Below, in pieces: positions 2,772 through 53,871 of a stretch of DNA of 64,000 nucleotides. Location: sequence record ON000910.1; one strand, 5' to 3'. A model generated the notes under the pieces. The model ran no database searches. It had not been told where the DNA came from and saw only the letters and a list, made by a program, of their open reading frames with translations. Within the stretch, counting starts at the first letter, position 1. Every line of letters starts with the position of its first letter. The position numbers and the translations under genes were made by a program.

Positions 2772-3103
2772 GATAAACCTCTTACTTTGATGTTTTCATA
2801 CACAGGCGCGACTTTTTCAAACACGACTGATTTAATCGTTGGTTGATTGTTGTCGATGTTAATCGCATTGATGAACGCAACTATACCGTCAATCGTGTTG
2901 AATTCCATTGATTCGAACCCAATCACATAACGACATTTCACTAGACGCCATTTGCCTTGCTTTTCAAGTGCAATGTAGTTCGATTGGCATGCTTTAGACA
3001 ACCCCATACCCGATAGATCATAATCTTCGTCTCTCAACGTAGTATCAGCTACGATTGCAGTGCGTGGGTTTTGATAATCAACATATAATACAATTTGTTG
3101 CAT
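2768..3103 (-). CDS. Hypothetical protein
   Basis: ORF with coupled start/stop. Confidence 0.7.
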   Translation of the reverse strand: MQQIVLYVDYQNPRTAIVADTTLRDEDYDLSGMGLSKACQSNYIALEKQGKWRLVKCRYVIGFESMEFNTIDGIVAFINAINIDNNQPTIKSVVFEKVAPVYENIKVRGLS

Positions 3104-6603: not shown

Positions 6604-6647
6604 AACATGCTTACTCTATTATAAGAAAAACACAGAAAAGATAAACA

Positions 6648-27104: not shown

Positions 27105-27151
27105 AATGTTTCCTTCAATGTTTGAGTATTATATCTAACAAATACGAGCAG

Positions 27152-27406
27152 TTAAACTATTCGTTTTGCTCGTTCTGTAAGTGCATCTGAGAATTCCGCT
27201 TCTAATGTTTCTAATGTATCGTCTAATGTTACAGTAACAACACACATAGAGTCAAGAAGAATAAATGTCACTTTTTCTTCGTCTGTCTTGATTGTTAAAT
27301 CTTCGTCAGGCATAATCATGAATTCTCGCGACCAGAATGCGAAAGACGTAGCAGGGCAGTCTAGCATATCACGTACAGTAGTAAGACGAATTGATTCAGT
27401 AATCAT
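27152..27406 (-). CDS. Hypothetical early protein
   Basis: Start at 27406, downstream of the promoter cassette. Confidence 0.7.
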   Translation of the reverse strand: MITESIRLTTVRDMLDCPATSFAFWSREFMIMPDEDLTIKTDEEKVTFILLDSMCVVTVTLDDTLETLEAEFSDALTERAKRIV

Positions 27407-31324: not shown

Positions 31325-31371
31325 TTCTTCACCTCGACCTATATTATACGTCTGCCAAGGTGGTTATTAAA

Positions 31372-31425
31372 CAAATCTTACTAATACTTCTAATATTACT
31401 AAAAGCACTAATACTACTAAGATGA
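31372..31425. repeat. 9-bp periodic degenerate tandem array (CTAA core)
   Basis: CTAA at 31381, 31390, 31399, 31408, 31417. Confidence 0.75.
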
Positions 31426-37467: not shown

Positions 37468-37530
37468 AATTAACCCAAAAAAGCCCCGACAGGAGCTTTA
37501 TTATATGATGAATGTAAGACGTGTTAAACT

Positions 37531-47758: not shown

Positions 47759-48045
47759 AGAGTATTCAACACATCAACAATTTGAATTTTTTCAACAGTG
47801 TGAAATCCGTATTCACAGTAAGGCATCTGTTCAGAAATGAACTGAATATCATCTTCACTGAACTCAGGGTATACTTCTGAGTTCGGACGCTCTTGACATT
47901 CGCCTTCTGTCCAACTCGCCAGAGAATCACCAGAAAGATGTACGAGCGTTTCAAATCGCTCAACTTCTTCACTCGATGCCGGTTTCAAATCGCCAACGTA
48001 ATCACCATCATTGGTGTCAACTTCTACGTAAATATGTAACGCCAT
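47755..48045 (-). CDS. Acidic hypothetical protein
   Basis: Likely start MALHIYVEVDTND at 48045. Confidence 0.65.
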   Translation of the reverse strand: MALHIYVEVDTNDGDYVGDLKPASSEEVERFETLVHLSGDSLASWTEGECQERPNSEVYPEFSEDDIQFISEQMPYCEYGFHTVEKIQIVDVLNTL

Positions 48046-48275
48046 TACAAATTCCTCATTATTGTGCCTATTAAAGCGAAAACAATCGCCGAGATGATCA
48101 ATACAACCCACCCAGCGACTGTATGACCCGAAATGATGAGCCATGCACCGAAGATAAGCCCGCCAACTGACAATCCGAGAATAACCAACATTGCGACGAT
48201 ACCGAACGCAATCAATGTCAACAACCCCGTTACGAACTCACCTAAGTTCATGTTACTCACCAATTTCAAAGTCAA
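48045..48275 (-). CDS. Small membrane protein
   Basis: Almost entirely hydrophobic. Confidence 0.6.
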   Translation of the reverse strand: MTLKLVSNMNLGEFVTGLLTLIAFGIVAMLVILGLSVGGLIFGAWLIISGHTVAGWVVLIISAIVFALIGTIMRNL

Positions 48276-48447
48276 AAAGATAGTGAATCTTGCCGTCAGT
48301 TAGCGAATCGCCGATGAGCGGGTCGTTAGCTGCAACAACTTTGCTGTACGGAAGTTTGATAAGCTCACCGTCGATTGTGTCAATTCGCTCAATTACAATG
48401 ATCGGCGTACCTGTTTTCAGTTCAAAATAATCTGTTTTACTAATCAC
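48253..48447 (-). CDS. Hypothetical protein
   Basis: ORF coupled to td. Confidence 0.55.
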   Translation of the reverse strand: MISKTDYFELKTGTPIIVIERIDTIDGELIKLPYSKVVAANDPLIGDSLTDGKIHYLFDFEIGE

Positions 48448-49346
48448 GACATTTTACCTTTTAGGGTTGGGTATGGGTCATAGTCATATACGCGAAAATC
48501 ACTTGCGCGTTTAGTTAACAACTGTGACAACGTTTCAAATTCAGGAAGTTCAATCTGAGGTAGCGCACGCGGCGTACGTCTCATTTGCTTCATTACTTGT
48601 ATTAGATGATCTTCATAAATGTGAACATCACCACCAGAGAAAATCAATTCACCGACACCTAAGCCAGTCAATCTAGCTAGTATATGCACTAGCAAAGCAT
48701 ACGATGCGATATTGAACGGTAGACCTAAGAATGTGTCAACTGAACGCTGATTCCATTTCAAGCTGATCTTACCATTACGCACGAACACTTGAAAGCCGTA
48801 ATGACATGGCGGTAGAGCTACGTCAACTGAGTTACTTTCAGTATGGAAGTACGGGTCCCATGCTTCAACAAGCATACGACGTTGCGCACTTTGCGTCGGG
48901 TCTTCATTAACCGCTGCAATATCGCACAGCAATTGATGAATCTGGTCAAACTCAACAATTTCTCGCTCTGCATTTACAGATAGACGTTTACGCCACACTT
49001 TGCCATAGACATAACCAAGGTCGTCTTCATTGCGAACAATACCTGCTTCTTTCGCACGCTCGTTCAGCTCGTCGAGATTTTGTTGCCAGATACAGAAATC
49101 TTCGTCTGATAATTCAGTGTATTTTCTCAGTTCAGAAATCGAACCTGAACCGCTCAAGAACCATAGCAACTCACCGAAAATAGCTCTTGTCGCCATTTTC
49201 TTAGTCGTTAGCAACGGGAAACCTTTTTCTAAGTCCCATCGAAGCTCACGCGAAACAACACTAACAGTATTCGTGCCTGTTCTATTCTCAAGAAAATCAC
49301 CATTTTCTAGAATATCTTTACAAAGTTCCAAGTAGTTTTTCATCAA
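48444..49346 (-). CDS. td: Thymidylate synthase (intron-free)
   Basis: RTGT, GFPLLTTK, LPPCH, QRSVD.FLGLPFNIASY. Confidence 0.97.
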   Translation of the reverse strand: MMKNYLELCKDILENGDFLENRTGTNTVSVVSRELRWDLEKGFPLLTTKKMATRAIFGELLWFLSGSGSISELRKYTELSDEDFCIWQQNLDELNERAKEAGIVRNEDDLGYVYGKVWRKRLSVNAEREIVEFDQIHQLLCDIAAVNEDPTQSAQRRMLVEAWDPYFHTESNSVDVALPPCHYGFQVFVRNGKISLKWNQRSVDTFLGLPFNIASYALLVHILARLTGLGVGELIFSGGDVHIYEDHLIQVMKQMRRTPRALPQIELPEFETLSQLLTKRASDFRVYDYDPYPTLKGKMS

Positions 49347-49352
49347 TTACCT

Positions 49353-49556
49353 TTAAAAATCATCGTCCCATACTGCTTGCACGGGAGTACATTGCATCAA
49401 CTGACCGTCAATTTCATAAGTCTCTGATTGCGGTTGAGTACTGTAAGATGTAGGTTGTTCAGCCTCAAACAACGTACCAGCAGCTACCGACGCTAGAATC
49501 CCTAGAATCGCAATCAAAACAATCAATTCGATCAGAGTAAAACCTTTAGATTTCAT
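49353..49556 (-). CDS. Type IV prepilin-like small protein
   Basis: MKSKG/FTLIELIVLIAILGILA: class III signal peptide with Glu at +5. Confidence 0.85.
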   Translation of the reverse strand: MKSKGFTLIELIVLIAILGILASVAAGTLFEAEQPTSYSTQPQSETYEIDGQLMQCTPVQAVWDDDF

Positions 49557-49592
49557 GATATTACACTCACAAAGTTAGTTAATAAACAGTTT

Positions 49593-49823
49593 TTACGGCA
49601 GTTTGCTCGTTTTGCGTGCTTGCTTTGCCGTTTCAGGTAGTTTCACTTCAAAGTGCTCTGCTTGTGAAACGTACAATACGCGCTCTGCAAGTAATTCACC
49701 GTTCTCGTAAACAGTCGTAATGAATTCAGGACCAGAAGAGCTATTTTTAACATCAACACCTGGTTTTGTCATTAGCTCTTCAAAGCGAGTCGCAGTAGTC
49801 AATTTAAGATTTAAGTTATCCAT
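49593..49823 (-). CDS. Hypothetical protein
   Basis: ORF in the operon. Confidence 0.6.
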   Translation of the reverse strand: MDNLNLKLTTATRFEELMTKPGVDVKNSSSGPEFITTVYENGELLAERVLYVSQAEHFEVKLPETAKQARKTSKLP

Positions 49824-50259
49824 GATGAGAATGAAACCCCTCTAAGTATTTTGCAAGTTCATATGTTCGACCGTATTTGTAGAACATATCTGAATCAAAG
49901 TCGCGACGCTTTAGACCTTCGCCGATCTTACGCAGTTCACGCCATTCTTTCATTTCGGCTTGAACTTGCATTAGCGTGTCATCGCCAATGAATGCTACAC
50001 CTGTTAGTGAGTGATGTAAACCTTCTTCTTGAAAAAATGTAATGTCTTCAACAACACCCATTTCACGAATTGTCTCTTCGATTTCTTCAAGATGGTCATG
50101 ACTAGCCGCTGACAGAACACAAATCGTCTCGTGATCATTCAGCCACTTATTGAAAACTGGGTTATCTGCTTTACGCGCAAGACGTAGAAGCGCATGTGCA
50201 CCTTGAATACCAGCTTGAATACCTTTACAATAGCGATTTACAAATACGTAACCTTTCAA
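49816..50259 (-). CDS. Peptidyl-tRNA hydrolase II-like protein
   Basis: GIQAGIQGAHA, W..DHETICVL, F.EEGL..SLTGVA. Confidence 0.55.
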   Translation of the reverse strand: MKGYVFVNRYCKGIQAGIQGAHALLRLARKADNPVFNKWLNDHETICVLSAASHDHLEEIEETIREMGVVEDITFFQEEGLHHSLTGVAFIGDDTLMQVQAEMKEWRELRKIGEGLKRRDFDSDMFYKYGRTYELAKYLEGFHSHHG

Positions 50260-53820: not shown

Positions 53821-53871
53821 AATTCAACCTCCGTGTAGTGATTATACACGGCATCACGATACGATAAACAT

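Follow-up and report, generated by a model that had tools for sequence, protein, structure and literature searches.

A headless prepilin encoded beside thymidylate synthase in KVP40-like Vibrio phages and its possible action on host type IV filament machines

What use might a lytic phage have for a pilin that apparently lacks a head and is encoded without any neighbouring pilus genes? The question is raised by a 67-codon open reading frame in the 64,000-nucleotide stretch of record ON000910.1 analysed here (the window). Over the 5 kb surrounding this gene, identity is 100% with Vibrio phage XZ1, 99.4% with ValKK3 and approximately 87% with KVP40, and by its sequence the window is that of a KVP40-like T4-type Vibrio myophage (Schizotequatrovirus). 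The gene, hereafter the mini-pilin gene, and the N-terminal parts of its product are as follows.

49353..49556, minus strand: coding sequence of the 67-residue headless prepilin (mini-pilin), ortholog of KVP40.0030 and of ValKK3 ORF231, PHROG 13280
49542..49556, minus strand: leader peptide MKSKG, residues 1-5, charge +2, whose final Gly precedes the predicted prepilin-peptidase cleavage site
49476..49541, minus strand: alpha1-N hydrophobic helix, residues 6-27 of the precursor, with F+1, E+5, G14 and G22, covered by the N_methyl and TIGR02532 matches

The N-terminus of the product reads MKSKG/FTLIE (the slash marking the predicted cleavage), which gives it a short basic leader ending in Gly, Phe at +1, Glu at +5 and a hydrophobic stretch of about 20 residues, with a mean Kyte-Doolittle hydropathy for the helix of 2.46 over 22 residues. 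The first-pass annotation had described a canonical class III signal followed by a hydrophobic helix, and this was borne out by the family models, as Pfam PF07963 (N_methyl) matches at 30.4 bits against a cut-off of 21.2 and TIGR02532 at 26.7 bits against 16.3. Judged on its sequence, the protein is thus a genuine prepilin-type protein. A Gly at -1 and a Phe at +1 behind a short basic leader lead to cleavage and methylation by peptidases of the PilD type, and the docking of subunits in the membrane and the filament relies on Glu at +5, the hydrophobic helix and the amine of the N-terminus.

The models do not point to a particular kind of pilin. The GspG major pseudopilin model TIGR01710 gives 27.3 bits, over residues 4-36 only, against an equivalog cut-off of 88.85, and the protein lies far under the cut-offs of every specific pilin or pseudopilin equivalog. 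An attempt to name the target machine (MSHA pilus, competence pilus or T2SS) from the alpha1-N similarity was rejected, as the GspG, GspH and generic pilin models score alike at about 27 bits each. The best match in Photobacterium is an orphan 182-aa pilin adjoining ppk/ppx. A full-length match (residues 1-67 of 67, E-value 1.9e-46) was found with PHROG 13280, a family of unknown function, and no model of PADLOC-DB for defence or exclusion matches the protein at E<=0.1.

The gene has previously been annotated as pilin-like. The record of KVP40.0030 already carries a pilin Pfam match and ORF231 of ValKK3 is labelled "PulG"; a 2026 paper on ValKK3 mentions weak similarity to PilE, without a functional test, and the published genome analysis flagged the gene as a possible virulence-type match (PMC13142089). 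The literature search returned nothing specific on KVP40 transcriptomics or on pilin-like proteins of phages.

The claim that the window holds no other pilus genes also stood. A regular-expression search of all six frames for G-[F..]-[TS]-L-x-E found a single site in the window, that of the mini-pilin itself. The nearest whole genome available for comparison (G001; 246,964 bp, with 86% of the words of the window) has one TIGR02532 match in its entirety and no prepilin peptidase, T2SSF platform or secretin, its sole T2SSE signal being a sub-threshold P-loop match. As a near-identical genome is without peptidase, ATPase, platform and secretin, any processing or assembly of the mini-pilin must make use of the machinery of the host.

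The mini-pilin gene occupies a fixed position on the phage chromosome, between a small ORF and the gene for thymidylate synthase.

48444..49346, minus strand: thymidylate synthase (td), 6 nt downstream of the mini-pilin gene, in conserved synteny
49593..49823, minus strand: 76-aa ORF, phrog_14360, upstream, without a transmembrane segment, cytoplasmic and with no Pfam match
49557..49592, minus strand: 36-nt conserved spacer with the ribosome-binding region, near-invariant in seven phages
49587-49583 and 49563-49558, minus strand: promoter-like element GTTTA, 19 nt, TAATAT, separated from the mini-pilin ATG by 1 nt

By tblastn the mini-pilin was found in 28 phage records, all of Vibrio phages and including nt-1 of the separate genus Mylasvirus. 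Its site just upstream of td is the same in these 28 named phages and in four more distant metagenomic lineages, and at every locus inspected it lies between an ORF of 75-77 aa and thymidylate synthase. The upstream ORF always adjoins it and in some distant relatives overlaps it. Among seven orthologs, residues 1-11 and YEIDGQLMQCTPV are invariant. Pairwise Nei-Gojobori estimates give a dN/dS of 0.06-0.26 for the gene overall, with dS up to saturation, and by part about 0.05-0.12 for the helix, about 0-0.07 for the C-terminal motif and 0.26-0.69 for the linker between them. From these substitution patterns the mini-pilin is a protein under purifying selection and not a chance ORF.

Conservation at such a site could also be ascribed to DNA or RNA signals serving td, such as a promoter or ribosome-binding site, with the ORF itself dispensable or barely expressed. 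The signals are there: the ribosome-binding site of td overlaps the stop codon of the mini-pilin gene, and the GTTTA-N19-TAATAT element, at 49558-49587, has the same architecture as the GTTTA-N18/19-TATAAT sites enriched in the window. This element may act as a promoter for td or else as an operator of translation; a transcript from it would start inside the mini-pilin ORF and would serve td. Distant relatives in which the upstream ORF runs up to or into the mini-pilin gene lack the spacer with its element, however, and phages without this spacer still show the protein motif, at 42-53% identity. With the substitutions following a coding pattern at the ratios given above, we regard conservation for the sake of nucleic-acid signals as very improbable.

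As for the time of expression, the overlap of the td ribosome-binding site with the mini-pilin stop codon suggests that the two genes are probably co-transcribed. Nearly all genes in the window are on the minus strand. A pattern search for GTTTA-N17-20-TAWAAT, the architecture of T4 early promoters, found six occurrences in the window against 0.56 expected from shuffling, with five of the six on the minus strand; these five, listed below, are probably early promoters of the phage.

6618-6646, minus strand: GTTTA-N18/19-TATAAT site
27128-27157, minus strand: GTTTA-N18/19-TATAAT site
31343-31372, minus strand: GTTTA-N18/19-TATAAT site
37500-37529, minus strand: GTTTA-N18/19-TATAAT site
53841-53869, minus strand: GTTTA-N18/19-TATAAT site

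The last of these (GTTTA-N18-TATAAT) is the nearest early-type site upstream of the mini-pilin gene, lying before the primase gene in the same orientation. Only two copies of the T4 late motif TATAAATA are present in the window, both at least 13 kb from the mini-pilin gene. Given the adjacency to td with the overlapping ribosome-binding site, the orientation of the early-type promoters and the lack of a late promoter nearby, we take the mini-pilin gene as belonging to the early or middle class and as probably expressed with the genes of DNA metabolism.

A number of other features were observed in this neighbourhood. Two genes downstream of td, at 48045-48275 on the minus strand, there is a very hydrophobic 76-aa ORF of unknown function (phrog_17378), another small membrane protein of the early block. 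Two genes upstream of the mini-pilin gene, at 49816-50259 on the minus strand, a 147-aa "hydrolase" was recognised as a relative of PTH2-type peptidyl-tRNA hydrolases (PF01981, 26.1 bits against a cut-off of 23; phrog_3668). In ValKK3 (L002, 4340-4990) a plus-strand homing endonuclease gene adjoins the gene for the PTH2-like hydrolase, and no ORF corresponding to it is present in the window at about 50260. In a distant relative (L094, 6222-8099) td is split by an ORF for an I-TevI-like GIY-YIG endonuclease, resembling the arrangement of the T4 td intron.

Behind the helix, the protein continues for a further 40 residues, which can be divided into three parts.

49425..49475, minus strand: variable linker rich in Ser, Thr, Gln and Pro, residues 28-44, of low pLDDT in both AlphaFold2 models and with a dN/dS at the upper end of the range within the gene
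49386..49424, minus strand: residues 45-57, TYEID-GQ-LMQCT, predicted to form a beta-hairpin in which Gly51 and Cys56-Thr57 are invariant, its strands being present in both AlphaFold2 models
49356..49385, minus strand: C-terminal tail PVQAVWDDDF, residues 58-67, with the acidic DDDF end varying by clade

It had been proposed from the bare sequence that the tail is very short and acidic. An acidic end does exist, but the tail as a whole is not so short, as a Ser/Thr/Gln-rich linker is followed by a predicted hairpin with a single invariant Cys before the acidic WDDDF is reached. The DDDF end is found in the KVP40 and ValKK3 clades and in the distant members P0005 and P0009, and is missing from VS1, QD01, nt-1, P0006 and P0033; recurring in distant members and lacking in several near ones, it appears to be accessory. 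The hairpin motif YEIDGQLMQCT, on the other hand, is invariant across the group of schizoT4 phages, and its Gly, Cys and Thr are invariant in the wider family.

Two AlphaFold2 runs, from alignments of three and nine sequences (mean pLDDT 66.5 and 69.0), agree on a helix from residue 8 to 29 or 31 with a core pLDDT of about 90, a linker of low confidence and strands at 45-49 and 52-56. The mature protein of 62 aa does not, in these models, form the globular alpha-beta head of the lollipop fold, for which the tail is too small. A Foldseek search of the model against the PDB gave no match at E<=0.001, as would be expected for a single helix with a hairpin.

The conserved Cys was considered as a lipoprotein site and rejected on inspection, as LMQC does not conform to a lipobox and its distance from the N-terminus is 50 residues. 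A copy of a segment of a host protein was also considered for the hairpin and dropped, since a search of 201 Vibrionaceae genomes with a degenerate DNA pattern for EIDGQLMQCTP, allowing up to three mismatches, gave no match. When 1.84 billion representative proteins were searched with a profile, there were 15,591 matches, nearly all confined to the signal and helix, and no tail with the hairpin and Cys outside phage contigs. Likewise, bacterial matches among the genomes of 185,579 species are N-terminal only (signal and helix), with no cellular homolog of the tail, and apparent full-length matches in CPR bacteria turned out to be ordinary pilins of 176-189 aa. The conserved hairpin with its Cys implies a specific periplasmic partner, beyond what a simple jamming helix would need.

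The mini-pilin shares with the type IV pilins and T2SS pseudopilins (MshA, PilA, GspG) the basic leader, the G at -1 and F at +1, E+5, G14 and a helix with G or P at position 22. It differs from these in lacking the alpha-beta head, in having a tail of only 40 residues with one Cys in place of a disulfide-bonded D-region, and in being encoded by a lytic phage away from other pilus genes. In a profile search of the PDB, the pilin matches cover alpha1-N only, with the best of them being the 61-69-aa geopilins (9egp, 7tgg, 2m7g), followed by Vibrio-type PilA (9laa), MshA (9lab) and GspG (5wda). The short pilins of the Geobacter type (Geopilin domain 1/PilA-N) are similar to the mini-pilin in size and in having little beyond alpha1. 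However, the match to them is that of the N-terminal helix alone, the mini-pilin has neither the PF14245 domain nor a partner resembling PilA-C, and where the helix continues in the Geobacter-type proteins the mini-pilin has a linker and hairpin.

These short pilins bring up the question of whether the mini-pilin is itself a working pilin, which the host assembles into its filaments or on their tip, with a change in adhesion, aggregation or receptor properties as the outcome. That functional pilins of about 60 residues exist, and that the ESM Atlas holds clusters of small N_methyl proteins of 62-75 aa, is in keeping with such a role. There is also a viral precedent in the haloarchaeal provirus SNJ2, whose pilins are, like the mini-pilin, encoded without viral machinery and depend on that of the host for secretion and assembly, which they hijack to form the dominant surface filaments (PMC12426801). 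The SNJ2 pilins differ from the mini-pilin in being full-size, filament-building and the product of a temperate archaeal virus; the phage here is lytic, with a short cycle. No gene for a head-domain partner is present, the neighbours being td and the cytoplasmic 76-aa ORF, Pilin_PilA (PF14245) returned nothing for the protein at E<=1, and the predicted tail is a disordered linker with a single hairpin. A working pilin is therefore regarded as a quite improbable reading of the gene.

With the docking features kept and the head missing, the most likely role for the mini-pilin is the perturbation of the type IV filament machines of the host, namely the MSHA pilus, the competence pilus and/or the T2SS pseudopilus, a role to which we would give about an even chance. 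The steps, as we infer them, would be these. The headless prepilin would be made together with the early or middle genes of DNA metabolism, and its basic leader and hydrophobic helix would insert it into the inner membrane of the host with the N-terminus inside and the C-terminus outside. The host prepilin peptidase (PilD/VcpD) would cut after Gly5 and methylate the Phe, and the 62-aa mature protein would enter the pool of pilins in the inner membrane. As it retains F1, E5, G14 and G22, the docking features of alpha1-N, but not the globular head by which a filament is held together, it could compete with the real subunits or cap them; alternatively, it could give the sensors of the membrane pilin pool the false impression that this pool is full. 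The periplasmic hairpin with its lone Cys probably adds a specific contact to a periplasmic component.

The decoy or poison part of this scheme, a dominant-negative decoy having been inferred in the first-pass annotation, is plausible by analogy. In Caulobacter, a synthetic 17-residue PilA helix, which acts through the sensor PleC, reduced susceptibility to phage ΦCbK by 77% and lowered attachment by 71% (PMC7196804). This peptide, CIP, the transmembrane helix of PilA, demonstrates that a headless pilin helix on its own can reduce pilus function, attachment and susceptibility to pilus-dependent phage, which makes it the closest functional analogue of the mini-pilin. The likeness drawn here is one of function. 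CIP comes from a pilin of the type IVc (Tad) class, works on PleC in an alphaproteobacterium and is not a natural phage product. [quoted passage not shown]

Whether the prepilin signal mainly serves to insert and anchor a periplasmic peptide with a target unrelated to pili has also to be weighed, the possible roles being those of an antiholin resembling RI of T4 or of a superinfection immunity protein resembling Imm or Sp of T4. The strongest constraint outside the signal falls on the periplasmic hairpin and its Cys, for which no pilus-related counterpart is known, so that the target could indeed lie outside the pilus systems. Small membrane proteins of similar size are placed by T4-like phages in their early regions, and the role of RI appears to be unfilled, as no RI homolog could be detected in G001 with either the T4 RI protein or phrog_1246. 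Nevertheless, a plain anchor would not need the invariant G-1, F+1, T+2, L+3, E+5 and G14, and the PHROG matches of the mini-pilin include neither the RI antiholin family phrog_1246 nor any lysis family. Cleavage by PilD leaves a protein in the membrane, unlike the releasable signal-anchor of RI. Moreover, the conservation of a charged residue, E5, within a membrane helix of such low dN/dS and with dS near saturation suggests pilin-type contacts and not a generic membrane anchor. We therefore consider a target unrelated to pili unlikely, and retain the perturbation of host filament machines as the preferred reading.

There are points which weigh against that reading as well. The receptor of KVP40 is OmpK and not a pilus (PMC13609209), leaving it unclear what the phage would gain from the removal of pili; any exclusion based on pili would be aimed at other phages, or else the benefit would lie elsewhere, in secretion, attachment or signalling. 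A decoy would in addition have to compete with the abundant pilins of the host within a short lytic cycle.

A word-based protein search for the mini-pilin returned three phage clusters only. The profile search of representative proteins recovered small full-length homologs, 61-73 aa long, whose tails are built in the same way (P0005, P0006, P0009, P0033 and P0030). The first four sit in the same position before td, on more distant contigs that share the T4-like order of genes, and the contigs with P0005 reach approximately 250 kb. P0030 is a 73-aa mini-prepilin with two Cys which lies between genes for RNA polymerase subunits (phrog_2166 and phrog_2051) on a contig of an N4-like phage (L093, 2114-4891); its match to PHROG 13280 spans the entire protein (E-value 8.6e-11), and neither it by tblastn nor L093 by blastn matched any named phage. 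A tail-only hhalign comparison of the KVP40 family with P0029/P0030 gave an E-value of 0.0013, a modest figure from a single comparison. On this evidence the gene would be one that unrelated lytic phages, T4-like and N4-like, have kept in their early regions.

In nine members of the family K-G-F-T-L-x-E, the mature G14, the hairpin Gly and the Cys-Thr are invariant; the leaders all carry a charge of +2 or +3, G or P stands at position 22 in all but one, and the tails are all net acidic. Down to about 42% identity, 9-12 members preserve K-G/F-T-L-x-E, G14 and G/P22, and G-1, F+1 and E+5 are invariant across relatives that are about 40-100% identical.

In IMG/VR, 144 viral stretches with prepilin-type N-termini were found, and among the best 80 of these, 19 are ORFs of at most 95 aa. 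They include a second family of viral mini-prepilins (L105, L110 and L130, with ORF starts at 3001, 2998 and 2998, respectively), of 76-82 aa with two Cys and a tail of the form ...EVRCI(D/E)GYKFV..., on contigs of 57-168 kb. Its relation to the KVP40 family is unsupported by tail-only hhalign (E-value 0.74). More than one family of headless prepilins thus seems to occur on phage DNA.

Small phage proteins which switch off the type IV pili of the host are known, namely Tip of D3112, Aqs1 and PfsE of Pf4; these bind PilB or PilC, are not pilin-like and come from temperate or filamentous phages of Pseudomonas. PfsE is, according to a passage in PMC12378983 which cites it, a small inner-membrane protein directed against host type IV pili. 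It can be suggested, tentatively and with somewhat less than even confidence, that headless prepilins are a general and so far unrecognised class of effector for the takeover of the host by phage, with unrelated lytic families (T4-like, N4-like and others) feeding a PilD-processed helix into the pilin pool and so shutting down pili and the T2SS or falsifying their signalling. Should such a class exist, it would be the first anti-pilus mechanism to operate by mimicry of the subunit and not by binding to the motor or platform.

The mini-pilin gene occurs in phages considered for therapy in aquaculture, and that its product is a headless, phage-specific prepilin and not an adhesin matters for safety annotation. 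If the mimicry is true, the pili of Vibrio, and possibly its type II secretion, would be disabled or mis-signalled by a natural peptide of 62 residues; attachment to surfaces, the uptake of DNA, secretion and infection by many other phages all depend on these systems. Such mimicry would then represent a new means by which phages control the host envelope and compete with one another, as well as a compact tool for probing the sensing of the pilin pool.
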